Notes: generated from the sequence alone by a model not told the origin. Shown: positions 10,012 to 32,000, numbered from the stretch's first letter. The stretch: 32,000 bases of DNA from Wallemia ichthyophaga EXF-994 (GCF_000400465.1 NW_008806276.1:300001-332000), one strand, 5' to 3'. A program made the numbers and translations.

Positions 10012-11951
10012 ATGGAATCTCAAGAGATTTTAGAATCAACAATCAAAAATGAAAATAAAAGATTGAACGAAGATCCAAATGATTTATCTAAAGTTGTTAA
10101 GAAGCGTAAGCAGCGTACACCTTCACCACCTTTATTTGAAAATCAGCAACTAAAACCACTTCAAACGGTTAGATTAGACATTGATTTGGATAAAGATGAT
10201 TACTTATTCAACTTTTTACATTTGTCTAAAAATTCTAATCAACTTTCTCCCGATAAGCCTTACTCGAACTTGATCAACTTATTGGATCATGTTAGTGATG
10301 CTGAGGATGATGATGAACCTCATCCAGATAAGAAACGCGCTGAATACGATAATTACGACGTTAATGACCCCTTCGTTGATGATAGTCAACTCACCGTTGA
10401 TGAACCAAAGATGATGGCCAAACCTACAAATGAGGGCTTTTATATTACAATTGATCATGTCGAACTAGAGACTAAATCTCCTTCTCAACTTAAAGAGAAG
10501 AAAAAAGATTCTGACAAAGACAAGCAAAAGAAACGTTCAAGCTTACACAACTTGTCCAAGTATTCCTCCTTCTTCCCTAAACCGCAACTACCTGCAACTC
10601 CAATTGCTCCAGATATATCTTTTGAAGGCATTTCTTTAGATGTATCTGATACACCCATCAACAAGAGCAGAGATTCTCCTGCAATCACTACCCAACATAA
10701 AGACTCTCCAGAGCCATCAAAGTCTCAAACACGTACAGACGTTAGCTCAATTATTGGTCCAAAGAAAGGTGGTTTACTTACAGGTTTCACAATGGATCAT
10801 CTACCTTCACCTTCCTGGTCAAAAGGTAAAAAAGAATACCCAATTGAACCTATTTCAGAGGATCTTCAAAGCGCATTCGAGCAGCTCACCGTACTCATTA
10901 TGAAGGAGAATTTTGAACAAAAAACAAAATTTCCTCAAAGTCTCAAAGATCCACTCAAACGTACAGCAGAAATAGCTATCCAGCTAGAACAGTATGATGA
11001 AAATCACTTTTTCAATCGTTTACCTAGACTCTTTCCATACAACAGATTCACTATGATGAAATTAACCAAGACTATGCTATTCGATTACCACAAAAATTTC
11101 TATGAAGAGCGTTACGAGTTATGTAAGGGTGCATTTCAAGAAGAAGTTGACAATGAGCGGGACCAGTACATTCATGACCACGAAGATGCTATAAAGCAAT
11201 ATGAAGCTGATTGGAATCATTTCCAAGAGCGTTACCCAGAAGATGCTAAAATATCTGAAGACATTAAATCAGGTGGTCATTCATTAAAGCTCTCACAGCA
11301 TCAACAAGCACCTGATCCACCAAAACCACGCTGGAAGTGGACAGAAAAGATGAACACCGCTTTGATGGCAATGACTGAAATCAAAGAGGATATATACCAT
11401 TTAGACCTTGAAAGATCTGAGTTGGATAAGAACCAACCTACTCCAACGCGTGAACAAACTTATCGTAGTAAGGTCTATGCCGAATTAGCGGCCATTTTTC
11501 CTGCTGATTGGATGCATACTACAGATATCTCTAGAAAAAGTAAGGAGTAATAATACTTCTAGATTACATTTTTGCTTACAAAGTCTTAGGAACAACCCTT
11601 CTTAGTCGTTCTAAACATCAAAAGACTTCAAATACGAACGATGAAAATAGCAACGCTAATGAGAAAGGGAAAGATAAAAGTAACGAGTCAAAAGTTGCAA
11701 AGGATGAGAAGGATGAAGAAAATACAAAGGATGAACAAGATGCAAAGGATACAGAAGATCTAAAGAATCCAAGTGATGCAAATTCGAAAGAGCAAAAAGA
11801 ACCAAATAAGCAAAGTGAATTCAACAAGCAGAATGAACCAAATGAGGCCAAGGATGTAGATCAACCAACAAAAGAAACACACGAGCCAGCAAATGAAACG
11901 AATCATTCACTTAAAGACACAAATCAGCCAGCAGAAACTCCTGAAAAGTGA
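10012..11951 (+). CDS. HPC2/ubinuclein-like HIR complex subunit
   Basis: HRD-like motif YDVNDPFVDDSQL...EGFYI and a ubinuclein middle-domain-like segment KFPQSLKDPL...RLPRLFPYNRFTM. Intron 11540-11589 leads to a charged low-complexity tail ending at TGA 11949-11951. Confidence 0.72.
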
Positions 11952-12005
11952 AATACAATTAAAGTGGCTTAAACTGTACAATACATGTAAAATGATACTA
12001 ATAAT

Positions 12006-13732
12006 TTATTTACCAAGTGGGCTTTGAGGATCATGACCAGCATTATTGATATTCGTACCGAACCAAGTGGATGTGACATCGCCATGTAATTGCAATTTTG
12101 ATTCCTGATTCTTATTAGATCGAGGTCCAAACAAGGTATCAGAAGCATCTGTATTTTGATTACTCATACTGTTATTTATACTGTCATCGTCTGAGTCTGA
12201 GTCGTCTTGTACATTTGCCATCACAGCAGCAGCGGTGAGCGCAAGTGGTTGTGGCTGTATACTAGTATCGTCTAATGAGCTAGTCGTAGAAGATGAAGAG
12301 ACATCAGGATTAAAGTCATTGCCCTTACTGTAATTTCTAGTCATAAACGATCCTTGATGCATGAGTGTATCCTGGTCATCCTCATTGTCATCATCTCCAG
12401 CATTAATTGCCTTAATTTTGAGGGGTTTCTTATTAGACTGACCAGTTTCTCTGAGTATGTCATCCACAATACTAGCTGCTGCTTCTTTAGCTGGTGTTTT
12501 CTGTAATTTAGACTTTGGCATAGTAAAGTTCATCGTCTGTGGAGGTGACATTCCAGGGGGTAAAACATCATCTTCATCTTCATCGGAATCAAGGCCATCT
12601 TCATCACTCTGTCTGTAATTGTGACTTGAAAAGTTAAATTTTCCCTCTTTGTTGTCTATGCGCAGTGGTGTGTTTCTCAAATCGGTGATACCATTCCAGT
12701 TTGGACCACCAAAAGGATTGCTGATAACCTTCCCCTTCTTAGGAGTCTTCTCTAAGCCATCGTTATCCTGATTCTCCTTATTGATCGGCACTTCATGCGT
12801 GGAGTGCTTGAAACTGAAGCTCATAGATGAAGTTTGTTGATTTTCATGGTAGTTGTTTGTGTCATTATAATTAATGGTATCATCAGCAAGTTGTGAGTCA
12901 TCAGGCTTGATTTCACCAGTTCCAGTTCCAACAGCTTCAGCTTCAGATGCGGAAGGTAAAGAAAAGGAAGGCAGGATGGATGTAGAATTACTGGTCTCAA
13001 AGTTGATATCATCGTCATCGTTCTCGCGTATCTGTCTTCTAAGTCTTTCAAATGGTGATTCAAGCGAATTAGGTATTGTTGTCGATCTATCTTGTATATT
13101 AGCTTCTGATCCATCAACTTTAGGCAACGGTGTTGAAGATACACCGTTGTTAGCTAATTGGCCGAGGAAAGAGTCTTGATTGAAAGTCTCATTTATAGAC
13201 CTGTCGTCATCGCGCTCAGCACCGTGGTTGATATTTGTGGCTGTAAGATCATCGCTGTAATAAGTGTCTCCGAATGATTGCTCTCCAGTCTGTGATACTC
13301 TGACCTGTGCTGCGTGCTCGAAGAAGGACTTCCAGTACTGAGTATTGCGTTAAGAATGTTTGTCTCAAAATCGAAAGACAAACCTTGGATATATTTCTCG
13401 AGTTATCAGTTGCTAATCCGTAATTTTTGATTTCAGGCAGAATGCGGCTGAGAATTACATTGTAGACGTTTGATAGATCAGCGTCTATGTTTTCTGATAA
13501 GAAAATGAGCCTTGTTATATCCGATTAAATCTACTAACGTAACGTAAGTGTTATTCTTTGGTCCATTTGCTCAATCTGACTCCTTTGTCAGTCACATGTT
13601 CACAATCAAACGGGAACCTACTTGTTCAGATGGAGGTAGATTATCGTGATCAATCCCTTTGATTCTGGGTATCCTGAAATCTGGGTTGTTTACGGGATCA
13701 GGACAAAACATAGCAAGCTGTTCAGATTCCAT
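12006..13732 (-). CDS. ASK1: DASH/Dam1 complex subunit Ask1, multi-exon
   Basis: Spliced N-terminus gives IEQMDQRITLTL...NIDADLSNVYNVILSRILPEIKNY, matching the Ask1 N-terminal domain. A long disordered tail contains PPGMSPPQTMNF. ATG at 13730-13732. Confidence 0.75.
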
Positions 13733-13780
13733 GACGGTTATGAAAGACGCGTAAACTAGAGGCGTGTTTAAACGATAAAA

Positions 13781-16479
13781 CTAAATAAAATAATTCCAAT
13801 CTATTTTACACTCATTCCAATCATCCTGCTTGTTCTCTAAGCTTAGTAGGTGCCGCAGCGTTGGCCTCCCATGAGGACAGTTCTACACAGATTAGGAGTT
13901 TAATCAATGATAGTAGTTTGAAGATACTCACCCAGGGCTGTTTGAGTGTTGAAAGATTCCTAACGATGCTTGTCATTTGCTTCTTCTTCAGGGATTTTCC
14001 AACCATTACACTCATTCTGCATGCTCGACTAGCAAACATGTCTTTTGCTTTTGTACATCGGGGAACCTGGCTTGGATTTTCATTGATGTCATGAATCAGC
14101 TCTTCTAAATCTACTGGCTACCATTAGACATATATCGACTTGAATATCAACGTACCCCTCAAATCGAACACTGTAGTTTTTGACAGGGGCAGAGCTACCA
14201 ATTGGCATCGTCTACCACTCGCGCCATCTCCGTCAACTTGAATTTCGAAGCCGTTCTGTTTGAGCGTCTCCAGGTTGTCAAAAACTGTCAATTCATCAGA
14301 CGCACTTAAATCGAGAGTACGTGGCCTGCCAAACAAGTCAATAATCACTACGCTGGTTGCGCTTCCAACTCACTTGATAAGCTTCTGAGACTGTATCCTA
14401 GAATTGAGTTGTAGCTTCTCGTAATTATACTTCTCATCTGCGGCATGTTGGTCAACGATAAAGAGATCATTCTCTTGTAGACCATTGTCGTTGACAGCCT
14501 TGCGTTTGACTATCATAAACCCTAAGTTGAACTGCCCAAGTATTTCTAGATTCTCAAAGTCAGTCTTGTGCAATACTCGCGATAGCGCTTGCTCTGCAGC
14601 TTGAGAGTTATCAAAGTTCTCTATTCCAGCTTTTTCCAGTTTTTCTGAGTACAACTTTTGCGAATTTTCATTAGTCAATGCGTTCGATTTGTTTGTATCT
14701 TTTTGCCATTTATAATGAAGTTCGTCAATATTAACAGTCAGTGACTGTCTAAAGTAGTTTGGCTCATCATCTTCTGAGCTTTCGTCGATCGTAAAAGTGT
14801 CATTCACGATTTGCATGTCAATGTTATGAGGATTCTGGACATCATTTTCATCTATTTGATTGTAAAAGCCATTGTCAAAAACTTTTGAATCAGTTTGATC
14901 GATTCGAATTTTCGTGTCAGTCTCTCTATCGCTAATCTCATCAATTAGTTCTGTCTCAGTTTTCCTTCTTTTAGGTGCTCGATCAACTGTTACTTGATTA
15001 TCAGGAAACACCTCTGATGCCCATGAAGCATGTCTCGTATTTATTTGAGAGCTACTCATTGGATTTTCGGGTAAATCGTTAACCTTCTCGCACACAACCG
15101 AACCATCATTGTCGCTATCAATTGAGTTGTTATTGGGCTTTTTTTGAAAATCATCTTGACTAATTTGTTCCTCTGACAATGACTCAGCATCCCTATCGTA
15201 GCTGTGTTGATCATCATCAGCATCCTTTTGAGGTAAATCAGAAAGCTTATTTGGGGGTTCATTTAAAGGGATTGAGTGCATTTGAATGCTAGGTTGATGA
15301 ATAATTGGCGTTGGAACTGATTGAGACTGTTTGTTTATCGTAAAGTGACCTCTAAATGGTTCAAAAAATAGGTTCAAATGGTAGTTGAGTGAATCTATTA
15401 AGCTAGATTCAAAGTGTAAGAAAATTGTACGCTTGTCAGGAGTAATATTGACGTCGTAAGCATCAGTGGGTATCTTAAAATCAGCGACGATAAAAGGATA
15501 AGATTGATTAATGTAAGATCTGAATAGGGAATTAATTGTTTTGGCGACTTTTGGTAGATTACAAGGTCTACCATTGATATAAAAGTATTGTCTGTCAGAA
15601 GTAGATCTTCCATGAGCGAATAAGGGTTTAGATATTGAACCAATCAGGTTTACAGTGAACGAAGTGTTAGTTATGCCCTCACGTTTTGCTATAGAAGGAT
15701 CGACTTGAACAGGTAATTCTAAAGAGAGCGGAACTAAAGATTGATTTGCTGTTGAGCCGAATACAGAAGCGATTGAAGAAGGTAAAGAAGATTTACCTGC
15801 AGTTTGAAAGATGATAGACTTCTTATTAGCTTTATTATAGTTGGAAATATTGAATTTGACACTTGAGTGTAAAGGGCATAACGCATAAGATTGTAACAAG
15901 TTGATAGCTTTGCTGAATTCTCTCTTAAGGTTCTTTTCGAACTCCCTTCTTCGAACGGGTAAATTGTAGAATAAAGTAGACAAAGAGATGGTGGTACCCC
16001 TTTGTCTTGGGATATTGTGTCTTAACTGAGTAATGTTTCCTTTGTTATCGAAGGAGATGTTTGTAGCTTTTGGTGACGTCACATCGGTTGCAGTTAAGCA
16101 ATCGAAGGACTTAGAGATGGTAGATAAGCTGGATAAGGCTTCACCACGGAAACCGAAAGTGCATAAATTGTTGAGGTCGTCGAAATTGGATAATTTTGAA
16201 GTAAAGTGCTTCTTAGTTAAGGATGAGAAGGATGATTCGTGGATACCAAAGCCATTATCAATAACCTTAAACCCATCGAAACCAGAATTATAGAAATTAA
16301 TTTCAATTATGCTTGAATTAGCGTCTAAACTGTTCTCAATTAATTCTTTGACGGCAGCTGTGATTAAGTGTGTGAGTGAGAGTGTATATGAAGATGAATA
16401 ACGAACATTGTAGATCTAAAATAACTTGATCAGATTGCAATTTATTTTTTGTTTTTGTATCGATTGAATTTAGGGACAT
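13781..16479 (-). CDS. PMS1: MutL-alpha endonuclease subunit (fungal Pms1 / human PMS2 homologue), multi-exon
   Basis: GHKL ATPase motifs SAVKELIENSLDA, DNGFGI, TSKL and TFGFRGEALSSL. Endonuclease motifs DQHAADEKYNYE, ACR and PW|NCPHGRPT. Stop at 13781-13783. Confidence 0.95.
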
Positions 16480-16513
16480 TGAGGTTGGTTGAACAAGAAC
16501 ACTATTGAGGCGA

Positions 16514-18010
16514 ATGGATCGATTGTTTACAGATAACTTAGAATATTTAGAATCTCTAAATAATTTAAGGCTAATTGAAATAAATAAGCAACCAAAGCTA
16601 CTCAAATCTCAATTATTTGATTCCACCAATGATTTAAATAATCTATTGATTAAGGATTATAATATATTCTTAAATAACCAATCAACTGCTAATTCAATTG
16701 AAAGTTCAAATTTAGACTTAGATTTGAATTTAGTAGATGATCTATCAATATTCAATGAGAACACTAGAAATATAAAGTCTAATCTGAAATCTTCAATTGA
16801 CTTGTTGAATTTGAGTAATGAGCTCCAGTTCATACTAAGATTACCCATAAAGTTAGATAACTTGATCAAATGTGATAACTTCAAAGAATCCATACTCTTA
16901 TTAGATAAGTACGAATTCATTATGACCTCAACTTCTAGTTTATCATCTCAACTAATCATGGAACTGGATAGCCTTAAAATGATTTTGATCAACAAACTAA
17001 TCATATCACTATCTTCAAATAAGCGATTAAGTGATTTAAACAATTCCATCAAATACTTGGAAAAGTTAACCAATCTAGACTACCGAGCGCTCTCCATTAT
17101 ATTCTTGAAATCTAAGTTATCCTTATTCAATCAACGAACATTTTCATTTAAAGATGAAGACTCCATCAAATTATACTTTGACTTTGTTAGACAATCCTTA
17201 ACTGATCTAATTAGCCAATTCAACTCCATTTTTAGCAACCTTGATGATAAACTCATTCTATTACCTTTCATACAAGACATTTTAGCAAACTTGTTCTCCT
17301 CACTACAATCCAACCTTAATTTTATCAATGACGCCGTAGCCTTATCTTCAATAGCTGGCTCTATCACTTACCTGAATCACTCCTTCTCATCTATCGGTTT
17401 AGACATTTCACCCCCTATATCTCAAATAATTCATTCTACCATCCTATCTTTCATAAACAAGTCCTTTAACATACCATCAAATGACACCAAAAACTACTTA
17501 CAATCTCTGCTCAAGTCTCCAAAATCTTCAAAATCTATATCATCTTCCTTACTGTCAGATAGTGTTAAAGTCAAATTATCACAAAATAAATTACCAACAT
17601 ACCCAATTTTTAACGGTGACTTTACTTTAAATCCCCCTCAACTTGTATCAAATCATCCTTTTCTGGCCAGCTGGTTAAACTCAATCCTGAATACCCTAAA
17701 TTCTCTCAGATTATTAGCACCAATTTCACTCAAATCTCATTTGAATAGCTCTTTAGATCAATCTCTCATCTTAATTGCAAGGATATTTTCAGTGTTTATC
17801 GTTCACTATTCACCTAGTAAAGATCCAAATCTTGATTTGAAATCTCTATACTTTACCATTTTTGCTTTCGTTCATCAAGCACTACCCTATTCAAAAGTAG
17901 CACTAACTCAATACATTTACCAAGATTCCAGCCACACTGTCTCATACGATCAAGAATTGAAGTTTATCATTGATCGCTTGATTGAATGGCTCGATAAATT
18001 TAGCTTCTGA
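16514..18010 (+). CDS. COG8: Conserved oligomeric Golgi complex subunit 8 (Dor1)
   Basis: Intronless, helical, Leu/Ser-rich ORF. It has Cog8-like segments ELQFILRLPIKLDNLIKCDNFKESI and PFLASWLNSILNTLNSLRLLAP. Confidence 0.72.
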   Translation: MDRLFTDNLEYLESLNNLRLIEINKQPKLLKSQLFDSTNDLNNLLIKDYNIFLNNQSTANSIESSNLDLDLNLVDDLSIFNENTRNIKSNLKSSIDLLNLSNELQFILRLPIKLDNLIKCDNFKESILLLDKYEFIMTSTSSLSSQLIMELDSLKMILINKLIISLSSNKRLSDLNNSIKYLEKLTNLDYRALSIIFLKSKLSLFNQRTFSFKDEDSIKLYFDFVRQSLTDLISQFNSIFSNLDDKLILLPFIQDILANLFSSLQSNLNFINDAVALSSIAGSITYLNHSFSSIGLDISPPISQIIHSTILSFINKSFNIPSNDTKNYLQSLLKSPKSSKSISSSLLSDSVKVKLSQNKLPTYPIFNGDFTLNPPQLVSNHPFLASWLNSILNTLNSLRLLAPISLKSHLNSSLDQSLILIARIFSVFIVHYSPSKDPNLDLKSLYFTIFAFVHQALPYSKVALTQYIYQDSSHTVSYDQELKFIIDRLIEWLDKFSF

Positions 18011-18052
18011 TGCATTTCACTATTTCTACAAATGTTTTCTCAATGAGAGGGT

Positions 18053-20863
18053 TTAAAACCACTTTGCGTCTAATTGTTTCGCTTTCACCTTGACTCATTG
18101 TTAGCATCAGTATTCATATTAATCAACTAATGGCTTACTATCGGTTTGACTATGATAAGACCAATAGACAACGCCAAAATCGTAATAGCTAATTGTATTT
18201 TGTTGAAACTTTCACTCAATACATCGAACTGTCTGGATGGTGAGACTCTAAACATGAAGATATCTTGTCCGTAAGCAACACAAATCGAAGTGGACTCTAA
18301 TTGCGTCGATGGTACGCATTGAATGTCTTTGACACCGATGACTGGATCTTCATTTAGTATTGCTTTTGGGTCATTTGGTATCTTGGCCAAATCACTATTT
18401 ATGACCATGTCGAATTGGCTATTGTTCTTCTTGCCTTTGCTGATTGCAGCCAACTTGTTAATGTGCATTTGCTTAGGTGTGTTAGGATCCAAGTATAACC
18501 TAGGTATCGAGATTATATCATCATTATCGTTAGCTATAATCAAATCCTTGTGTGTAATACCATTCCTTGTTACTGTTGGACTTATAGCTTTGATCGTGTT
18601 CGGTGAATACAGATATTCATGTTTCAAGTCTTCGACATTGACAAACAATTCTTTGGAATGAACTATTGTACTCATGTCCATTGTTCTGGCAACTGTGATT
18701 ATTCTATTGTCAATAAAAACGCTATTTTCTTCTTCGCTCTCATCCTCTATTGTGTACTCTCTCTCGACTTGTCCTGTCACACCATCTACGACATATAGCT
18801 GCTTCATAGATGTATCTGCAATTACCGTAGTAATTAGTACAGCATGCGGGTTCAAGTATTTTTCAATTGCTTCTCTATTGGGCCCAATCTGTGCTACCGA
18901 TGCAGTTGCACTGTTTATACGTTCTTGAACACCGACAATAGCTTGGTTTTCTGGTGCAAAAAATGACCAGATTTGATTTGACTCTATATCTTCATAGTTC
19001 ATCATTGGTTTGTATCCATTTACTTTATCCTCAGATACTTGTAACGTGTAATAAAAGTCATTGGATATTGAATCGAATTTATCTCTGACAGTCTTGCAAA
19101 ATGGATATAAATGTATACCCAGTTCTTCATCTATCAATGCTATTGCTCTGTTACCAGAGCTACCACACTCTATATCAAGTGGTATGATTTTGATCGGTCT
19201 GCTTTCCATTAAAGACAAATAAGCAACACTGCCAGAGCCCGTTAAAGCCGGTCCACCCAAAGCATCGACCTCAATTGCGAGGGTTTTCAATTTCCCATTA
19301 ATTTCTAGGTATTCAACCAATGCTAAGACGTGAGCTGCATCATTAATACCAGCTGAGCGTGTGTTTATCAAATGTGTTACTCTCGTGTTTGAGCCAAAAT
19401 TTCTACTCCAAAGTGTCTTGTTCGGATTGGCACTATCCAATCCTATTAATTTACCTTGTTTTGTGCCAACAATCACTATTTTTCTGTATCCGAATAAATC
19501 TCTAACTAACGAAGTTGAATCTCTGTGCCTGTCTCCTGTTAAAAATCTGGAACCGAAATTGACAATATATCTGGGAAAGTATTTGATGTTGTGGAAATGA
19601 CTCAGGATTCTTGGGATAAAGGAGTACAGTTGGTTATTGTCAATTGAAGTCATTGGTTCATCTTTTTCTGGTAAATCAACCATAGTCAACGACAGTGGAT
19701 CTGATAAGCCTAATTCCTTCACCCATTTTATTTGTAGGCCTTGATATAGTTCCATTGTCCCGGATGTCGTAATCAAAGCCATTCTAGCCACTGAGCTGTA
19801 GTTGTTTGCTAAAGTTGCTTCACTGATAATCTGTATAGGTGTGCCGCGCTTTGTCTGATCAAAAGGCAATGTGTATGAGCTTTCCAACTTGCCGTCGGGA
19901 CCGTCTGGTGTAAAGATGTTGACGGTTAAGGCCTGAGTTTTTTTTAAGTAATCGAATAGTAATCAAGTGATCACTAACTCGTAGTGCATTTGCGGGTGAA
20001 GTCTGTACTATAAATGCTCTATTGTGCTTATCTAGATAACCATTAAAGTATGTCAAAGTGGGATCATACTTGAAGGCATGTAGTTGATTGAGAACACCCA
20101 TTTCGATAGTGTAAACCAAAAGATCGTCTTGATAGACAGCACTGAAGATATTCTTGGATGACAGATTCAAATCAACGAGAGTTTTAAAGGACTTTTTTGA
20201 TGACGTGATAGGTTTCAAAGATTTAAGATCAATGATAGAAAGCCTAGAGTGTTTGTTTAGCAATATTAAGTAGTCTCGGGTGAACTGAGTGCTAAGGTGA
20301 TCCTCCAATTTCGCCTTAGACATTGTATCACCCGAACTGGGATCCAAAGACATAATTTCGTTGCTGTTGTATAAGTAGATGAAATTTGATTGAGACTGTA
20401 GACGGTAATTGTCATGTACTTGGAGCTCCCAAAGTAGATCTGCGGATAGAATATTGAAGCATCTCAGATGATTGTTATCAAGGACCAGGATGGAGTGTTT
20501 GTCATCCTTTGTAAAATCTACCTGGAAGTCACTCGAAGCTGCCAATGTTTTGTTCCAAAATTCATGCAAGCTGTGTCCATCAAACAGTCTTAGCGTGTGT
20601 TGAGAATCCAAACTAGCCAAAACGTCTTGATCAAACTTATAAGAAATTAGATTATCAAAGTTTATTCTGTTGAGTAGTTTGCCGTCTGAAGGGTTGAGTA
20701 CGTTGATGTCTTTATTGGAGTGGGTGACCAGCGCAGTCTTGTTTTGAGATACTTGCTTGTAGTTGAACTGATGAAAATATATTTTTTCTGGGATATTTAT
20801 TGATTCTAGCTTAAACCCGCATATTACTTGGACCAATGCTATAATCGCGATCAACCACTTCAT
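18053..20863 (-). CDS. EMC1: ER membrane protein complex subunit 1
   Basis: Signal peptide and a large beta-rich lumenal domain. C-terminal LESTSICVAYGQDIFMFRVSPSRQFDVLSESFNK, then a TM helix and last exon VKAKQLDAKWF* (stop 18053-18055). Confidence 0.9.
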
Positions 20864-20890
20864 CGTCGATTAATATCAAGTTCTTTACAA

Positions 20891-23800
20891 TTAAAAAAGT
20901 TTATTTGCGAAATTTATTGATATCAAGTCAAAGCCCTCTGTTTTAACCCCATTCAAAAATATATCATGCCTCTCTATCAACTCCTTTTGATTCTTCCTTA
21001 ACTCTCTTATCACCCCATGACTGCGCGCGCACAATGGACATTCGCTTTCATTGTCTGCTAATGACGTCGCATTGTACGAGTGCCCGCACGCAAAGTGTAT
21101 TGCAGGTAGCTCCAGTCTCTCCCCTGTAGAAGCACACCTTGTGTTTTGGAATGACTGCGCCTTGTCACTCAATCCATTCAGCTTGTTCTCTTTCTTTTTA
21201 CTTTCCTCTCGATACGTGAGAAACAGCAGCTCGTCGAGTCTGCTCTTTTCTTCGTCGTCACTAACTTTTCTTATAATCCATTCCTTGATTGCTCCGATCT
21301 GTACACCTGCTTTACTGATTATCTCAATTACCTCACTATACTCCGGTAGCTTGATCGACTCGTCCACATGCCCATTTTTGTTCAATTCTACTTTTACGTT
21401 ATCTATTTCATTCAAAAGATTTTGTATGTCTGACAGTCTCTTGCTGTCACTCTCGATTCGATCAACCAAGAATTTCAGTACAACCACGTACATGTGAGGA
21501 ACAAACCTTCCGTACAGATGGATGGACGTGATTACTTGCTCGATCATCTCTTCTCCTATACCTTTGACATCAGAGTATTTACACAACTCGATGTAATGAT
21601 AAATTACTTCTTCGTATAGCCCTAATATACACCAAATCTTCAGCTTTCCCTCATCATAGTCTTCTAATGTGCATGTCATTAACGCGTGATTCAAGTCAAT
21701 GGGTATCTTATCGTGATTCTCGATCATAGTGAGTGACTTTGAGCGTAAGTCTTCACGCATCTTCCCATTTTCTGCATTTTTCGCTACTTTTAGATATACC
21801 TCTAACAATGTCGTCATCAAAGATGAAGCATCATTGTGATTGATTGGTTTAGACAACGTTGGCTGATCACATGTTTTGATGCTAGTTGTATCAATTTCTA
21901 TCCCCACCCTAGATTTCAAAATAGCTTCAATGAATTTGATTAACTGTTTCGGGACTTTGACGAAATGAGAAAAATACTTGCGCGGGGATGGGGGGACGTA
22001 AACATTTTCGTCCTCCTCCGATGACAATTGTGAGCCATGATTACTAGGGTTGTATCCAATATAGTTTATCGTGTTGGTGGCTATTGAATTTAAGCCACTT
22101 TTCCTCTTAATAAGCTTCTGATCAATGGATTTAGGCTTGTACGTGCCACAACACAAATCTATCAAAACGCAAGTGGTTTCCTCACACATGTTCTCCAAAA
22201 GCAATCTCCCGTAGTGATGTAGGTACTTCTCAGCCTGCGTATTTAATTAGATCAGGATTATTTAGCAATGATCAACAAACATCTTTGGAAGGAAGCTCCT
22301 CGAGATAAGACAATGCGAATGCCCAGTTATTGTTATCTTCAATCTGTATTTTTAGGAAGTCTTCGTGCCTATGATACTTTGCACTGAGCTGCAAAGCATG
22401 CTGTACGTATCCTGCTTGTCTCAAGACTCTGACAGCAGTCTGAAGGTCGAATTTCACTTCATCATTACTATCAGACTGATTGATAAAATCATTTAAACAG
22501 TCAACATCCTTTTAAAGTTAGTAGTGAAAAAGGAAGAATTTAGCATTCAGTACCTTTATTTTGATGAGACAATTTAGCAATAGCGTGGTATATTCAGGAT
22601 TGGCATATCCTTTGTAATGTAACTCTTGAAGGTATTTCACTAGTTCGTGAAATCGTTGCTTTTCTAATAACTAGAAGATTTTTAGGCATGGACCAGAATG
22701 CTAGGGCAATGCTACTTGCCTTTCGAATAATACTGCTAGATTCGACGAATCCAATTGCTTGGGAGTACTCTAGTGTTGCCGAATGAAAATCGCTTTTATC
22801 GTATAAGTGGTCACCGTAAAGTCTATGGACATCCATTATGACATCCTTTGCCAACTTCTTTTCTGTGACTATATCCAATGCTAGCAAATAATAACCCTTA
22901 GCGTAAAGTGAATTCAACTTGGCATCAATACTGATCTCGCTCAGGGAATACGTCTGAAATAGAAATTAAGTTCAAGTATTAAAACCCGTAAAATCTTACC
23001 TTGCCGTCATTGCAAATAATAAAGAGTGTTTTGTCGCACTTGACTACGTCAATAATGCCCTGATGTAGGTCCTTTTTGTACGCTACGAATTTAAGGTTAA
23101 GATCAATTATAGTGATTGAATTTGCGTCTGCACTAGCTTTGCTGTTCATGCAAAGCACAAGATAGTTTTGAAAGCTCCGTAGAAACAATTTTTCTCCTTC
23201 GAATGCATACGTCGCCCTCCTGCCTTCTATTCCATAAAGATATAATGCCTCTTCTCTAGCTAAAACCAAACTCGCTGAAGCTACTGGACTTGGTTGAAGA
23301 CAATTTAAACTACAACCTAAGTCGTCGAGTGGTGCAGCTGTACGACTACTCCTTGTTTTAATGTTTGAGACGAGCACGCAAGAAGGTGTTGATATAAACA
23401 GAACGTCCTCTGATGAGCCAAACAAAAGACCCGTTATCGGCTCATTAACGTCCACGATAAGATTGTAAGGCTTTAATTGTTCCAACTGCTGTATTGCCTG
23501 CTTGAATCTTCGCAACAAAATGACGCTGCCATTTGCGAGACCAATTGCTAAGAAGGACAGGTCGACGGAAATAGCAAACGAAGAAACCTGTAATGTCAGA
23601 AAGCGAGGACTTGATGATTAGCACCTACAGGGTGAGGATCGCTGTTGTGCTCTATGACTTTATGATAAGCGAGTTTAGGTTGATCAATCAAGTTCCAGCA
23701 CTTAATGACTGGATAGTTTGAGGAATTTTCCTAATTTATCGCGTTAGATTATCAGAATCGGAAGAATACACCTACAGCAAGAGCTACAAGCATGCTGCTG

Positions 23801-24061
23801 GACATGTCCAAGTAAAGGCATTTGCAATCCTCAAAGCCATTCCATTCGTGGATAATCTCAAGGTTTTTGTTATAAATTTTAATGTTGCCATTTGGGTATA
23901 CTTTGATGATCGATTCATGGTTGGACGTCATCAGACAGCCATCAAGACTTTCCACAGAGTTCTTCACTAGTGTTGAATTAAAGAAATTTAGAGATTTCCA
24001 CTATTTCTTGTTAGTTGTAGTCGCGTCAAGCCACATTACCTACGTTGTGTTTGGACGCCAT
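20891..24061 (-). CDS. VPS11: HOPS/CORVET subunit Vps11 (Pep5), multi-exon
   Basis: MASKHN|WKSLNFF start (intron 24001-24043), beta-propeller exons (LYLYGIEGRRATYAFEG), VHRLYGDHLYDKSDF, KFDLQTAVRVLRQAGY and a C-terminal RING-like region ...ELPAIHFACGHSY...ECPLC. Confidence 0.92.
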
Positions 24062-25396
24062 CAGTGACGGTGTATTGATAAGGCAAGCCCTGGGTTACAA
24101 AAACCACTAAAAAAAAAAAACCATGGCCCCCTCAAAACATTTTTATTATTGCTTGAATCTTTAGATCTCCATCGCATTATTATACTATTCCTTAGATGCT
24201 AGGATTCATTTCAACGACCGTTTTATGGGGCTTTGCCAGCCCAACTGTTTCGACATGGCTTTTTACAACTTAAGCACATCAAATGCTCCCAGACATGTGT
24301 GCTGCATAAATAACGGATAAATACTTATCCATAGTACTCGCTACTATACTCTTTTTGAGGCCACGGCGAAGAAGCAAAAGTATTGAATGGTGCGACTTTA
24401 TTTGGTTGGAACACTTTCAAGTTGCCCGATGACTGTTCCACGCGGTCCGCAATGTTTGTGTCACTAAAAGAGTTTCTAGGCTCGGCTGACGAGCAGCGTA
24501 TGACGGACTTGACTCATCGTCAAGTGAATTTAATCAAATGGACACAGATTAGGTCTCCCAAAATATCAACGTGAAGATAATAAATTTGCTTGTGCAGCAC
24601 GTTCCGACGGAGCCCTACAGCTGTACAGGCTGTATGGCAATGGTGAAGCGCTCATGCTGGATGCCGAGTGGAGCGCAGTGTAGGCGTGGGTGGGGGCAAT
24701 GCCGGTAGCATCGAAGTTAATATGAGCGTGGCGAGCAGTGATTATCTCTGCTACACCAGTTTACTTTTTTTTTCTTTTTGTTATTTGTCTTCGTTCCACG
24801 CCACCCCATGCCACTCTGCGTCAACCTCTGTCTACATCACCCTTCCAGCCTTCCTGGTTCTCAAGTCAGACAGAAGGATATGTGTAATACGATACATATC
24901 TATTTAGGAGAACTGTTGAAAGAATGTTTACAACTCTTTCAGAGCCTCAATCATTTTCATATAATTTACTGTACGCCCACCTACAGACTTACCTTAGAAC
25001 ATAGAACGCTTAAGCTTACTTCTTTGAAGTATAGGCTAATCTCATACGTTCTATCTTATATCGCTGTGTGCGTATTTCTCAATAGCGGTCTAAAGCTTAC
25101 AATGGGGGAGCTTAATAGATGAAATTGATGAGATGCATTATTTATATAAAGTGAGTATTGGGAATACATTTGTGGGTGCAATAGGTAGTGAGATCCGGAG
25201 GTGTTATATTAAAATCTGCTTACTTCCTTTGCTACTTCTATAATTCTTAAACTTTTTCTTGGACATAGTGGTTTGTGAGGAGGTTTATGTATTAGGTTTG
25301 ATTTCCCTAGTGGAAGATTACCATCGTTGATTCAACATGTTTGTTAATGTGCCCCGGTAATAGGTCAGGTTAGTGCTAGCGCTGCCTGTGTAAATA

Positions 25397-25619
25397 CACG
25401 TGAAAATTTACGCCTGAGCGCATGCTGTGCATCCCTATAGCCACGTGACAAGGAACGAAGGTATTCTAGAAATAACAGTTAGCACAAAAAATAACTGAAC
25501 ACACCAACAGGTATGAGGAATAAAAGCTGAGCAGATTCGTTTACGAAAATAAACTCACGACAAGTAACGAGGGTAGCGGGTAAGTGAAGCACATCCGAAA
25601 CAAGTTACGGGCCACGTGA
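25397..25619. promoter_or_regulatory. Cluster of three CACGTGA E-box (bHLH/Cbf1-type) motifs
   Basis: CACGTGA occurs at 25397, 25442 and 25613. The 25442 copy reads GTCACGTG on the minus strand. Function is unproven. Confidence 0.3.
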
Positions 25620-25835
25620 GCCACAGAGAAAATCACCTTTTCAGTCGCTGCTGCGACGTCTAAGCAGTCCACAATTATATAATCTTTTTCTTGCGATTCA
25701 ATGTCTTGAGTGACATCGCAAGTCGTGTGCGCCCGCTTCCCTTGGGTAATCTTCACCACGCCTAGTAAACTATATCTTCAATCCATCAACTCTTCAACTA
25801 CAACCTGATAGTACGAAGAAGATTGTAAATCCGAG

Positions 25836-27650
25836 TATTGACGCTGACGTTTCACCAAACAAAGCTCCTCAACCAACGAACCAACGTATGTTTCCCGCCA
25901 TAGCCAAAGCCCCGATACGTTCTCATGTTTTCGAACATGACGGGTAAGATGGCTAAAAATTGGACGGAAGTGTAAGAAGTTGGTCCTGATCCATGATCCG
26001 AAAATGTGGAACATTCTGCAAAAGTCAAAATCAAAATTGATATAAAAACACTATCATAAATGCTTCCATTAGATTGAGGCAAATTGTTAAATGAGTGATA
26101 CAAAAAATCAATTTACAGTTATAGACAAATTATCCGATGTAGAAGACTTACCCTTCGGTGACAACTTTGACAATACTTTATTCTCAAACAAATTAAGCAC
26201 TATGCAATATTATGATAATTCATTACCGCAAAAACGTCATAGATTGTTTTATTTGCGTACATCGAAAAAGAGAACGCAGTAAAGATGGCGCGATATATAA
26301 GCAGCAAAACGTGAACAGCATTAGTCTGCTTCAAAGTCAACATTAAACAAATAAAATCTGTAAAATTGAATCAGGATACCGAGCTCTGACTCAACATTCA
26401 ATCAGAGAAAGCTGCCATTCGAAACAAATTTTTGTTCAAGCAAGAAAAAGAAATATTACTCGTATAGCCTGGTATTATTGAAGACAGTGAGTTTGCACAT
26501 GGTTATTTTATACAATTTGCTGTCTCGTGTTTCTCCGCGCATCTCAGGCAACGGAGGTGGTGATCTGCATACTTTGTGTGTCTCAACTTTCCACATTTTA
26601 GGCATTGTCTCGGAATGAGGTTCGCTGGTTCTACTCTAGGCATTTCTCCGCTATAACCAACATTCAGGGATACGCTAGCTTTGGCGGCGTTGATGTCGTT
26701 CAGTTGCATCATTGATCGACAGAATCGTCAATGCACCCTCAAATGACGTCTCAGAGATGCGCAAGATCGTCAAGAACCTCGATCGCTTATGTTATGGATT
26801 ACGTGTAGTGATTGATTTAGCTGAGCTCACGAGGAACGTTCACCATGATGTAAAATGGATTAAAGCGGCCCCAAACACGTACAATAGGCTCTGCGAGCCC
26901 ATAAATGAGCTTAATACTCATGTAGGATTATACCAGGCCGTTAGAGAACAGAGCAAAATCCTACTATTCAATTAGATTACTCTGCTAATCAAGTTGCACT
27001 CTTGTTCCATCGAGACTTCGAGAAATCTGGCATAAAATTGTCAGACGCCCCAAGAAGAAGATTTATGTAACTCTCATTAGAGTCTTTGCTGCTTGGAGAC
27101 CAATCTTTCCGATCAAAGCCCGCGTTGCTTTGTGTAAACTGTACCTAACGAATTGATAGATTGACCCATCAACTGAAAACCCCATAATCTTAGATAGAAA
27201 GGGCAAAACCGACAGCTTCGTCTACGGCTTAGCTCGATTACTTTTCCAAAATCGAAGTAAATTTCGAACTGATTAATACGCAAAATTGCAAAGCTAAAGA
27301 CGCCGGCAATAATTGAAGCAAAAAAAAGGGTGAAATATTAGAGATAACTTATGCCGTATATCCACATTATTTTCAGACAAATCGTGTACAAGCAGGAAAA
27401 TGACATTCTTCTTAAACATGTGACAGAACCGTGTAGGATATTATAAACTAGTGATCTACTTATTTAATCGTCATATGTTATATAATCATAGAAAATAAAC
27501 AATAACATAAAATCGACTAAAAGACACCTTCTTTGAGTATATTGCAATATTGTGAAACATGAGTAACGACGAATTGATTTATTCCCACATGAACGGAATC
27601 AATTACGCTGTGAAATGCTAGAGAGTGTATCTCGTTTACATTTCCTAACG
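25836..27650 (+). repeat. Left arm of a long near-perfect inverted repeat (1815 bp)
   Basis: Position x pairs with 56951-x throughout, and the ORFs mirror each other (26091-26282+ and 30669-30860-; 26503-26712- and 30239-30448+). Mismatches found by hand: 26862, 27618, 27639 and 27647. Confidence 0.97.
26491..26712 (-). mobile_element. Degenerate non-LTR retrotransposon (Tad/LINE-like) ORF1/gag zinc-knuckle relic, left-arm copy
   Basis: ...GEMPRVEPANLIPRQCLKCGKLRHTKYADHHLRCLRCAEKHETANCIK*PCAN fits the LINE ORF1 array Cx2Cx4Hx4C / Cx2Cx3Hx4C / CAN. The first knuckle has lost its last Cys, and a stop precedes the third knuckle remnant. Confidence 0.65.
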
Positions 27651-29300
27651 AATGACGGCTGCTTCAAAAGTTCGAAATGTATAAAACAAATCGTTCATTA
27701 AAAATCGTCACAGTGAATCCCAATCAAGTGGGGAACTCTGCTTCGAAGCTTAAGAAAACTCTTTAAATGTCAAATTTAATGTGAGTTACTTTTGAAAACA
27801 CCTCGAATAAGTAACTTGTTACACTGATGAATTTTGGCCTCAGAGGGGCAGTTTTCATCTGATCTTTTGACATGGGTTGTCATTTTTCAAAGCTTTAATA
27901 AATTTAAAATATCTCGTAACCTTAAAACTACTTAGTCGCTTAAGCATCCCATAACTATTTTAATGTCTCGCCACCTTTTCAGGACTAATCTTTAACATTG
28001 AGTCGCTTTAAAATATGAATAAACGAGAGAAACTTCAACGGGTAAGCAAACTTGTTCTTAAAATTGAATTTAAACATGTTTTGAAATAAAGAAAATTTAC
28101 TCATTATCTTAGTGGCAACACAATACTTTGAAAATCATTAAAGTGCTGGCGGTACTCTGAACAGCGCAGTTCAACACACCGTCTTCTATCGCACGGTCCG
28201 ATTAATAAATAAGATAACGACACGTGAGACAACAATCCTTTTTAAGATTCAAGTCAATAACCGATTTTTGGAAAAAAAAAAAAACGACTATTTGAAACTC
28301 GGTTCTTTTGGAATAAAACATTACTTTACATTTATACCTGCATCTTAATTTTTAATCGAATAAAACAGCTTTATGTCACTACAGTCGTAAACTTTTACGG
28401 TCTATTTTAAAGAATGCATTCAAATGCGTCTCATTTGCTTCAAATGAAGACAAAACAACGGCTATTGCTTAACTATTCATTCTTGAAAAATTGTAATTAT
28501 AATTTGGCAAAAAGGTTTCAGTTGAAAACTTTCAGCAAATCATAATTGCGTGTCGAATCATCTGTTTCCATTTCAATAAATCAAAAGATCTAAAGGAACC
28601 TGTTGGTTTATTTTTTTTTTTTTTTTTGAGTACATATCCGGTTTGTGATACTGATTAAGCAAACATCTATGTAAAATAATAAATGTTGTGCAGAAGTAAT
28701 TGATTAAATTTCTTTTAACGATTATCAGTTTCTCAGGAAGGAGTTTATGCGTGTATGTTTAGTGATTTCACTAGCTCGTGGAACCTGTGCGGACAGATCT
28801 ATTTCACATATGGCAAGGCTGCCCTTGCACTCTGCAGCCCTGTGAAAAGGTTTTTTTAAGAATTCAACAATCTCATCCTTGTCATACTCAGGTACTACAT
28901 AGGAATAGCATCTTATATTACAAGAATTCACTGTTTTGACTTTATAAGTACTAGACTTTAATAACAATCGAACCACCTTCGGCCGTACAAGTCGATTTCA
29001 TTGATAAGTTCTACAAATTAACTTTCAATTTTATAGCGTACAACAAAAGTAGATCACCATTTCATTTAAAAGTAGTAATTTGCACTAGAGTTACTAAAGT
29101 GAAGTTATTTTACGAACAGTAAGTCCGAACTTTGCAATTCAACTAGTGCCTATTTTCGCCTTGCTTCCGCACGACTTCTTCTTTTTAATGCTTTAAGACA
29201 ACCTTGACAGTCAGATGTTGATTCAAATGGTAATTTGACTTTTTTTTTAATAAGATAACATCTATAAAGATAAAACTGTTCTTTAGAAACACGCGTTATC
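27651..29300. other. Unique AT-rich spacer/core between the inverted arms (1650 bp)
   Basis: Hand-counted sample lines at 28021 and 28321 are 30% and 25% GC. Homopolymers: A13 (28272-28284), T17 (28611-28627) and T9 (29240-29248). No recognisable gene. Confidence 0.9.
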
Positions 29301-31115
29301 CGTAAGGAAATTTAAACGAGATACACTCTCTAACATTTCACAGCGTAATTGATTCCGTTCATGTGGGAATAAATCAATTCGTCGTTACTCATGTTTCACA
29401 ATATTGCAATATACTCAAAGAAGGTGTCTTTTAGTCGATTTTATGTTATTGTTTATTTTCTATGATTATATAACATATGACGATTAAATAAGTAGATCAC
29501 TAGTTTATAATATCCTACACGGTTCTGTCACATGTTTAAGAAGAATGTCATTTTCCTGCTTGTACACGATTTGTCTGAAAATAATGTGGATATACGGCAT
29601 AAGTTATCTCTAATATTTCACCCTTTTTTTTGCTTCAATTATTGCCGGCGTCTTTAGCTTTGCAATTTTGCGTATTAATCAGTTCGAAATTTACTTCGAT
29701 TTTGGAAAAGTAATCGAGCTAAGCCGTAGACGAAGCTGTCGGTTTTGCCCTTTCTATCTAAGATTATGGGGTTTTCAGTTGATGGGTCAATCTATCAATT
29801 CGTTAGGTACAGTTTACACAAAGCAACGCGGGCTTTGATCGGAAAGATTGGTCTCCAAGCAGCAAAGACTCTAATGAGAGTTACATAAATCTTCTTCTTG
29901 GGGCGTCTGACAATTTTATGCCAGATTTCTCGAAGTCTCGATGGAACAAGAGTGCAACTTGATTAGCAGAGTAATCTAATTGAATAGTAGGATTTTGCTC
30001 TGTTCTCTAACGGCCTGGTATAATCCTACATGAGTATTAAGCTCATTTATGGGCTCGCAGAGCCTATTGTACGTGTTTGGGGCCGCTTCAATCCATTTTA
30101 CATCATGGTGAACGTTCCTCGTGAGCTCAGCTAAATCAATCACTACACGTAATCCATAACATAAGCGATCGAGGTTCTTGACGATCTTGCGCATCTCTGA
30201 GACGTCATTTGAGGGTGCATTGACGATTCTGTCGATCAATGATGCAACTGAACGACATCAACGCCGCCAAAGCTAGCGTATCCCTGAATGTTGGTTATAG
30301 CGGAGAAATGCCTAGAGTAGAACCAGCGAACCTCATTCCGAGACAATGCCTAAAATGTGGAAAGTTGAGACACACAAAGTATGCAGATCACCACCTCCGT
30401 TGCCTGAGATGCGCGGAGAAACACGAGACAGCAAATTGTATAAAATAACCATGTGCAAACTCACTGTCTTCAATAATACCAGGCTATACGAGTAATATTT
30501 CTTTTTCTTGCTTGAACAAAAATTTGTTTCGAATGGCAGCTTTCTCTGATTGAATGTTGAGTCAGAGCTCGGTATCCTGATTCAATTTTACAGATTTTAT
30601 TTGTTTAATGTTGACTTTGAAGCAGACTAATGCTGTTCACGTTTTGCTGCTTATATATCGCGCCATCTTTACTGCGTTCTCTTTTTCGATGTACGCAAAT
30701 AAAACAATCTATGACGTTTTTGCGGTAATGAATTATCATAATATTGCATAGTGCTTAATTTGTTTGAGAATAAAGTATTGTCAAAGTTGTCACCGAAGGG
30801 TAAGTCTTCTACATCGGATAATTTGTCTATAACTGTAAATTGATTTTTTGTATCACTCATTTAACAATTTGCCTCAATCTAATGGAAGCATTTATGATAG
30901 TGTTTTTATATCAATTTTGATTTTGACTTTTGCAGAATGTTCCACATTTTCGGATCATGGATCAGGACCAACTTCTTACACTTCCGTCCAATTTTTAGCC
31001 ATCTTACCCGTCATGTTCGAAAACATGAGAACGTATCGGGGCTTTGGCTATGGCGGGAAACATACGTTGGTTCGTTGGTTGAGGAGCTTTGTTTGGTGAA
31101 ACGTCAGCGTCAATA
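29301..31115 (-). repeat. Right arm of the long inverted repeat (1815 bp)
   Basis: Reverse complement of 25836-27650; ends ...GTCAGCGTCAATA at 31115. Confidence 0.97.
30239..30460 (+). mobile_element. Degenerate LINE-like ORF1/gag zinc-knuckle relic, right-arm copy
   Basis: Translation identical to the left-arm copy, including the in-frame TAA at 30446-30448. Confidence 0.65.
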
Positions 31116-31481
31116 TCCGTTATAAGTTGTAGTGTTATTTTCTACTTTGCCCTTCATGCAGATTATTATTTCAGGTTGATCATTCTGCTGTCCTATAATT
31201 TCATGTTGAGTTTAAATGATCGCCAGACAAGTCACATGCTAAATGCCTCCTTTATTGGAAGTAATAGAAACCAAGTTAAATAGCACGTCGTCTTGTTACG
31301 CACTTTGCGTGTAATGAGTATGCCAACATTTTACGAATGCACAATGTCACTGATTGAATTCGGTTATATTGAGTACTTCTTGTGGAATGATGATTACTAT
31401 TAATTATAATTCAGTTAAAAAAGTTTCTAAATATCACACTTCAATTCAAGATAGGGCAAATTTACAAATTTACAAGAAAAA

Positions 31482-32000
31482 TCAAGTGCTAGCTCTTTCA
31501 ATTTGACCGCCATGTAGAGTTATAAATTTGATTTCCAAATAAGCAGCCAAATCTGTCAATGGTTTGTAATACTTCAATGAAGACCATGGAAAGAGAAGAC
31601 CGTTCTCATTCGAAATGGCATCAAAGTCACTGGAAATAGTAAGAGGCCGCCTTTGACTATATGATTGATTAACTCACGATTCCATATCCTTTCTCAATTG
31701 AACGAAATATTTCGTTTCATCAGTAATAATACCATCAACTCCCCACTGATTGGCAGAGTTAACAAATCCCATATTCAATCTTTCACTCACTTTAGAAGCC
31801 TCGACCATTTCGGAACGATTATTGACAGTCCAAACCATTACACCTTTATGTGATTCTTTGCACTGTTTAAGAAATGCTTGACCGTCGCTACTGATTAATG
31901 AGCTAAATGACATACTCAAGACCTTGACATGATCCTTGAATTCGATGAGAAGATGTCTAAGCTGGAAAAATGACGCTTACGAAGAAGTGAGATCGAGCGA
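31482..32000 (-). CDS. Glycerophosphodiester phosphodiesterase (GDPD) family protein, Pgc1-like; 5' part lies outside the window
   Basis: GDPD C-terminal motifs VMVWTVN and WGVDGIITD across an intron. The last exon ...GLLFPWSSLKYY...GGQIERAST* ends at 31482-31484. Confidence 0.75.

Follow-up and report, generated by a model that had tools for sequence, protein, structure and literature searches.

A candidate inverted-repeat centromere in the gene-free interval upstream of VPS11 in Wallemia ichthyophaga

The centromeres of Komagataella phaffii consist of inverted repeats of 2.0-2.7 kb, with 0-1 differences between the copies, around a mid region of 0.9-1.3 kb, which gives a total length of 5.4-6.7 kb (Coughlan et al. 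2016, PMC5010909). They lie in untranscribed regions of 6-9 kb with unexceptional guanine-cytosine (GC) content, and their sequences are unrelated between chromosomes (PMC5010909). Only seven sequences longer than 1 kb are present as identical copies in the genome of K. phaffii, and four of these are the centromeric repeats (PMC5010909). Their centromeric nature was proven by chromatin immunoprecipitation sequencing (ChIP-seq) of Cse4 and by transcription coldspots, one per chromosome (PMC5010909). Here we describe a palindrome of comparable layout from the basidiomycete Wallemia ichthyophaga EXF-994 (GCF_000400465.1, NW_008806276.1:300001-332000). The analysis covers a single 32 kb window of the chromosome, and positions are counted over this whole window. 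In it two near-identical arms enclose a unique core between VPS11 and a glycerophosphodiester phosphodiesterase (GDPD) gene. We consider the palindrome a candidate small regional centromere of the inverted-repeat type, which at a probability of roughly 45% is the single most likely explanation. A full-text literature search for Wallemia together with centromere returned no description of a Wallemia centromere.

A repeat search of the window detected one inverted pair, 25836-27670 and 29281-31115, with copies of 1835 nt that are 99% complementary and separated by 1610 nt. This pair is the sole long repeat within the 32 kb. Base-by-base comparison of the arms over 1835 nt gave 10 mismatches and no indels. 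Eight of these mismatches are packed into the innermost 33 nt and the other two (26862 and 27618) are spread over the outer 1803 nt. When the arms are cut at 27650/29301, they measure 1815 nt each with four mismatches and leave a core of 1650 nt, which agrees exactly with the two 1815 bp arms without net indel reported in the first-pass annotation. The left arm then covers 25836-27650 (plus strand), the unique core 27651-29300 and the right arm, which is the reverse complement of the left, 29301-31115 (minus strand). The palindrome has a total length of 5.28 kb. Its outer ends are abrupt, with no complementarity past 25835 and 31116. Toward the core, the arms pass into unrelated sequence by way of a 33-nt zone in which identity is about 76%; in the left arm, homogenisation appears to reach to about 27638, and the decayed transition zone covers 27638-27670. 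No residual symmetry was found in the core, since alignment of one half to the reverse complement of the other gave a local score of 17 compared to a mean of 16.1 for shuffled sequence. The core includes an A13 run (28272-28284) and a T17 run (28611-28627), and tandem subrepeats beyond homopolymer runs were not found in the arms or elsewhere in the gap. Guanine and cytosine make up 38.4% of the window, 38.1% of the arms and 32.5% of the core. Inverted-repeat centromeres are characterized by near-identical arms of about 1-4 kb around a unique core of about 1-3 kb, and the palindrome has both.

The palindrome occupies the sole large gene-free gap that this very compact genome has within the window. 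The gap measures 7.39 kb (24068-31457) and extends from the 5' end of VPS11 to the 3' end of the GDPD gene. Outside the palindrome it comprises a unique non-coding left spacer (24068-25835, 42.0% GC), which presumably holds the VPS11 promoter, and a short right spacer (31116-31457, 33.6% GC). A gene-less interval of about 7.4 kb had already been noted at 24062-31481; it was borne out, and its borders were refined by the limits of homology to a relative described below. No Pfam domain was present in any stop-to-stop open reading frame (ORF) of at least 45 amino acids in the gap, and the searches for transfer RNAs (tRNAs) and RNA families yielded neither an ARAGORN hit nor an Rfam match at the gathering threshold or at E≤1. 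Genes elsewhere in the window are tightly spaced. A distance of 27 bp lies between the VPS11 stop codon and the ATG of EMC1, and the divergent start codons of PMS1 and Dor1 are separated by 34 bp, in keeping with the spacing of 27-54 bp read from the sequence earlier. Published Wallemia genomes are 9.6-9.8 Mb in size, are about three quarters coding, contain 1.67% repeats and carry 514-538 genes per Mb (PMC3849046). In genomes of this kind, 7.4 kb without a gene is far from usual. An unusually long gene-free interval, a further mark of centromeres, is thus present within the 32 kb seen.

The similarity to the K. phaffii centromeres extends to several properties. Both have an arm-core-arm organization with near-identical arms of about 2 kb (0-1 differences in K. 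phaffii and 2 in Wallemia). A unique core of 1-1.6 kb, a total length of 5.3-6.7 kb, a location in one long gene-free interval and a compact genome of about 9-10 Mb are also common to the two, as are a base composition near the genome average and the lack of a shared motif. Unlike K. phaffii, which belongs to the Ascomycota (Saccharomycotina), the host is a member of the Basidiomycota (Wallemiomycetes), and the Wallemia palindrome is known from its sequence alone.

A gap at the same site was found in a relative represented by a 41 kb Logan contig from SRR25399871 (L001). Its proteins are 71-92% identical to those of the window (about 82%), and the contig is collinear with window positions 10716-24067 and 31458-32000 at 76-85% nucleotide identity. 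Homology stops at 24067 and resumes at 31458, and the syntenic gap in L001 is 6.85 kb long versus 7.39 kb in the window. No DNA or protein similarity between the two gaps was found, and a Pfam scan of the ORFs in the L001 gap gave no significant domain. What is informative is that a gene-free interval of about 7 kb has been kept at this site in the two lineages, although their genomes are otherwise nearly spacer-free. The first-pass annotation had asked whether VPS11 and the GDPD gene flank a similar structure in sister species; in L001 the 6.85 kb gap is there, but the inverted repeat is not. The k=31 assembly passes uninterrupted through the L001 gap, which argues against a near-identical repeat in it. 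A single inverted pair of 59 nt with 76% identity (E about 5e-6) occurs in the L001 gap at 1287-1344 and 7854-7912, set in by about 110 nt from either edge. This pair may be what remains of an older inverted repeat or a fortuitous match. Its resemblance to the inner arm ends of the palindrome (E=3.4) was weak and was judged to be due to chance.

Contigs from a strain that is about 99% identical to the window (Logan L011-L013) cover the left side of the palindrome. One of them, L011, aligns to window positions 25865-16944 and reaches exactly 30 nt into the left arm before it terminates; the 64 nt spanning the junction between spacer and arm are identical to the window. Logan contigs are derived from a k=31 de Bruijn graph, and a contig that enters a repeat halts after k-1 = 30 nt. 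Since L011 ends k-1 nucleotides inside the arm, the first 31-mer of the left arm would have two contexts in the sample of this strain, with the same boundary, provided that k=31 applies. An empty site in which 25835 is joined to 31116, which the first-pass annotation had named as a sign of transposon insertion, was not encountered, and the junction between flank and arm is identical in this strain. Substitutions between the window and the strain amount to 0.65% in genes and 2.8% in the left spacer, where three indels also occur, including one of 48 bp. The two arms of the window differ from each other by 0.11%, corresponding to the two sites in their outer 1803 nt. Provided that the repeat is older than the split of the strains, about 3% difference (some 50 sites) would be expected in arms that are not homogenised, whereas two sites are seen, and this would point to homogenisation of the arms by ongoing conversion. 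The decay of identity at the inner arm edges only fits an old repeat that is maintained by conversion.

Two further observations concern the left spacer. The 48-bp indel relative to L011 is located at window positions 25631-25678, about 160 nt outside the left arm. A block of 225 nt at 24296-24520 shows zero differences from the contigs of the 99% identical strain, against about 3% in the remainder of the spacer. This block may be a conserved element upstream of VPS11, such as a promoter, 5' untranslated region or small exon; no counterpart was detectable in the 82% identical relative.

More distant Wallemia loci were compared as well. Judged from the Rtt109 ORF, the nearest named species are W. 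hederae (71% identity) and W. mellicola (68%), and proteins from Logan assemblies reach 98% and 82%, in line with the Wallemia-like basidiomycete proposed in the first-pass annotation. The loci of both named species were compared as far as Dor1, and they have the same gene order as the window from the GMC oxidoreductase gene to Dor1. A more distant Wallemia-like organism with 27% GC (L002-L007; ENA metagenomes KERN20-1, ERZ27275090) carries the block of Dor1, PMS1 and a gene of unknown function upstream of VPS11 instead of downstream of EMC1, which identifies the VPS11-upstream region as a rearrangement breakpoint. The Illumina contig SPNW01000030.1 of W. hederae (L014) ends 9.7 kb past the start of PMS1, compared to a distance of 9.3 kb from that start to the beginning of the arm in the window. 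The W. hederae contig thus breaks about 2 kb upstream of VPS11, which is suggestive only but may reflect a repeat-induced assembly break at the same site. Further copies of the arms were not found by look-ups of the exact products of four arm, core or flanking-gene ORFs in public assemblies, and JGI metagenomes gave no match when scanned for an exact 28-mer or on the basis of VPS11.

Each arm also carries a trace of a retrotransposon. An ORF of 74 amino acids at 26506-26727 (minus strand) shows a CCHC-like pattern, and a phmmer search with its product against 1.84 billion representative proteins gave four matches, to proteins of 280-527 amino acids, with E values of 3.5e-24 to 7e-5 and identities of 70% to 39%. 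The best match was P0128 (E=3.5e-24, 70%). The matched proteins belong to multi-copy clusters, with one member present on 84 contigs; most of the contigs measure 5-6.3 kb. The contigs of this family encode an ORF1 protein of 477-488 amino acids and, after it, an ORF2 protein of 1283 amino acids in which endonuclease, reverse transcriptase and RNase H domains occur. The family can accordingly be classified as a non-long terminal repeat (non-LTR) retrotransposon or long interspersed nuclear element (LINE). Intact family members of 5.4-6.3 kb (L018-L023) occur in multiple copies in the same metagenome series. The relic in the arms is a gag-like ORF1 segment with a double CCHC knuckle, located at 26479-26727 (minus strand) in the left arm, as found by phmmer and tblastn, and mirrored at 30224-30472 (plus strand) in the right arm, as found by tblastn. 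Its approximately 250 nt correspond to ORF1 residues 309-389 or thereabouts (of 477 in L018), with 69% amino acid and 73% nucleotide identity to the closest copy, and its first zinc knuckle is damaged. No tblastn match to ORF2 or to the remainder of ORF1 (queries from L018 and L020) was obtained in the window, in the gap of the relative or in any of the loci. The palindrome as a whole was rejected as a LINE insertion, as only about 250 nt of ORF1 are left, without an ORF2 match or a tail. Judging from these matches, each arm contains a short, old LINE relic and not the element itself. The remaining 1.55 kb or so of each arm and the entire core are anonymous sequence. No transposon relic has been reported in the arms of K. 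phaffii, which is a difference between the two systems.

Several of these observations favor a centromere. The gap of about 7 kb is retained in the relative, the arms appear homogenised and the dimensions are near those in K. phaffii. The same arm/flank junction occurs in a second strain, and both the rearrangement in L002-L007 and the assembly break in W. hederae lie near the VPS11-upstream region. The first-pass annotation had arrived at a centromere from the architecture and the gene-poor setting; the architecture, the retained gap and the apparently homogenised arms fit that proposal, the gap of the relative without an inverted repeat weighs against it, and on the whole it is plausible. 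If the palindrome is a centromere, CENP-A nucleosomes would occupy the unique, slightly AT-richer 1.6 kb core, with a density falling outward into the 1.8 kb arms, and the transcribed VPS11 and GDPD genes would bound the CENP-A domain. The arms would be held identical by frequent intrachromosomal gene conversion or by reciprocal recombination, which would flip the core. As in Candida tropicalis and Schizosaccharomyces pombe, the inverted-repeat geometry may contribute to setting up or insulating the CENP-A domain. We infer kinetochore function, homogenisation of the arms and the existence of one such locus per chromosome.

Related arrangements in other fungi show how such a locus may vary. In C. 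tropicalis, C. sojae and C. parapsilosis inverted repeats likewise flank a core that is rich in CENP-A (PMC7292649). C. albicans is repeat-less at syntenic sites, which parallels the repeat-less gap in L001, and synteny breaks adjoin Candida centromeres as they do the palindrome (PMC7292649). The repeats of C. tropicalis differ in being 3-4 kb long, homogenised between chromosomes and provided with a 12-bp motif (PMC7292649). In Barnettozyma, inverted repeats with 99-100% identity and a length of 0.5-4.3 kb are found in long intergenic regions, as in Wallemia (Hession et al. 2025, PMC12711049). Also similar is that the presence or absence of the repeats varies between Barnettozyma species at conserved locations; these are, however, budding yeasts for which Hi-C support exists, while for the Wallemia palindrome the DNA sequence is the source of information (PMC12711049). 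The variation in repeats at conserved positions among the relatives in Barnettozyma and Candida makes the repeat-less gap of L001 compatible with a centromere.

Among the basidiomycetes, Malassezia also has a compact genome, with centromeres of 3-5 kb in gene-poor intervals and synteny breakpoints at the centromeres (PMC7025860). The Wallemia palindrome resembles the centromeres of Cryptococcus in its basidiomycete host and in the presence of retrotransposon relics, but it has one 250 nt LINE ORF1 relic per arm and lies in an interval of 7.4 kb. Cryptococcus centromeres are arrays of 20-100 kb composed of LTR-element remnants. The basidiomycete centromeres considered are thus either AT-rich and repeat-less (Malassezia) or large and rich in transposons (Cryptococcus), and the inverted-repeat type is not known to have been described from basidiomycetes.

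A number of findings weigh against a centromere. Malassezia centromeres have no inverted repeats and possess a core of less than 1 kb with 78% adenine-thymine (AT) and a 12-bp motif, whereas the palindrome has long repeats and a core with 67.5% AT (PMC7025860). The palindrome accordingly does not have the make-up of a Malassezia-type centromere, with a sharp GC trough, a core of about 78% AT, an AT-rich 12-bp motif and no repeats. The first-pass annotation had described the core as AT-rich and unique. It is unique and devoid of symmetry, but the AT-richness is only mild, at 67.5% compared to 61.6% for the window, which is a GC content lower by 6 points (32.5% versus 38.4%). Of all 500-nt bins in the window, the one with the lowest GC falls within Dor1 and not within the gene-free gap. 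The inverted repeat is not conserved, as a long inverted repeat was not found in the L001 gap. Nothing can be read from the dissimilarity of the two gaps, since identity between the window and L001 is only 62% at 4-fold degenerate sites, and any unconstrained DNA would diverge to this extent. The graph branch in the 99% identical strain would equally arise if the arm were a dispersed repeat. The arms contain the LINE relic and a few short ORFs with coding-like codon usage, although the codon test is weak at such ORF length.

The main rival explanation is a functionless inverted segmental duplication in junk DNA, which we regard as appreciably less probable. An old intergenic region with transposon debris would have undergone partial inverted duplication, for instance through a template switch at a stalled fork, and its copies would since have been kept alike by gene conversion owing to their proximity, with no role of the region in chromosome segregation. 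Such a history is consistent with arms of anonymous sequence that carry a 250 nt LINE ORF1 relic, with the unremarkable composition of the core and with the lack of an inverted repeat in the gap of the relative. It accounts for everything except that two lineages keep a spacer of 7 kb. In a genome that is about three quarters coding and in which start codons can be 34 bp apart, 7 kb of non-coding DNA would be hard to keep in two lineages if it were unconstrained. The persistence of the repeat and of its exact boundary across strains with 2.8% neutral divergence also argues against a functionless duplication.

An improbable explanation is a mobile element inserted upstream of VPS11, either a non-autonomous DNA transposon with very long terminal inverted repeats, resembling a foldback element, or a composite element. 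The sharp outer ends and the retroelement debris in the arms would suit a mobile element, as would the apparent occurrence of the first 31-mer of the arm in more than one context in the second strain. The ends could moreover hide a palindromic TA duplication, as the terminal bases are TA..TA. No convincing target-site duplication and no direct repeat were found at 25835|25836 and 31115|31116; the tetranucleotide TCCG is found at either side, with a shift of 2 nt at the left, an event with a chance of about 6%. No transposase and no other domain was found in the ORFs of at least 45 amino acids in the gap, and the arms lack the tandem subrepeats typical of foldback elements. That identity decays at the inner edges only fits an old repeat maintained by conversion. 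In addition, the diverged strain has the same junction, an empty allele was not seen, and the gap of the relative exists without the element.

Still more doubtful is a gene-bearing palindrome or invertible switch, in which the arms would encode a small lineage-specific protein or RNA, or in which flipping of the core would switch expression. Coding potential was assessed by a codon-usage score trained on the genes of the window, for which known genes average 0.149. Three short ORFs on the plus strand of the left arm gave coding-like scores, which lends slight support to a gene: 0.161 for 26091-26279, 0.152 for 25750-25944 and 0.079 for 26694-26972. The same threshold was passed by 18% of non-coding frames, and the selection of open ORFs biases such scores upward. 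The ORFs of the palindrome contain no Pfam domain, exact copies of the products looked up were not found in public assemblies, and the arm ORFs are unmatched in all related loci that were compared. The sole difference between the arms that falls in an ORF is non-synonymous. An ORF of 150 amino acids in the left spacer of the 99% identical strain is frameshifted in the window and therefore does not represent a gene. Neither a pheromone-like CaaX ORF nor a mating-type (MAT) gene is present nearby. A mating-type flip-flop of the Ogataea or Komagataella type was rejected, as the window has no homeodomain gene, no pheromone receptor gene and no credible CaaX pheromone ORF.

That the palindrome is a chimeric assembly artefact of long-read or amplification errors is hardly credible: perfect palindromes are a known class of artefact, but in this one the 1.6 kb core is unique, the genes to either side are syntenic and the gap matches that of the relative in size, and an independent short-read assembly branches exactly at the arm boundary.

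The genes that flank the gap are both on the minus strand. VPS11/PEP5 (20891-24062) has its 5' end toward the gap and was identified by the Pfam domain PEP5_VPS11_N (E=4e-39) and the orthologues P0001 and P0123. The GDPD gene (31458-32000), recognized by the Pfam domain GDPD, has its 3' end toward the gap and continues beyond the window; L001 is homologous to it over 611-1164. Further to the left of VPS11 are EMC1, Dor1/COG8, PMS1, a gene of unknown function, an HPC2/ubinuclein gene, SYO1, Rtt109 and an intron-rich GMC oxidoreductase gene. The interval between PMS1 and Dor1 (16479-16514) coincides with the lowest GC content (27%) and the sharpest GC-skew reversal of the window. An unannotated ORF of 373 amino acids with upstream exons (12006-13800, minus strand) may encode the kinetochore subunit Ask1, because the W. 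hederae gene model beside PMS1 (L014 15530-20026) bears a DASH_Ask1 domain.

Should the palindrome prove not to be a centromere, it would be a homogenised palindrome of an ordinary sort within junk DNA and would hold little interest. More tentative than its identification as a candidate centromere is the wider proposal that it would be the first inverted-repeat-type centromere in the Basidiomycota and the first in the Wallemiomycetes, having arisen independently of those in Saccharomycotina and fission yeast. This proposal includes a repeat-less sister centromere at the same site, so that the structure would turn over in place, with the LINE fragment tracing the renewal of the sequence. The arm-core-arm design would then have evolved repeatedly in very distant fungi with compact genomes, and such repeated evolution would speak for a role of the geometry itself in specifying or insulating CENP-A chromatin. 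A centromere at this site would be the first for the Wallemiomycetes, a basidiomycete class that branched early, has been little studied and consists of extremely xerophilic and halophilic moulds, and would provide a landmark for chromosome-scale assembly as well as a candidate element for stable plasmids. W. ichthyophaga and its repeat-less relative would together form a natural system in which the in-place replacement of a centromere could be followed.

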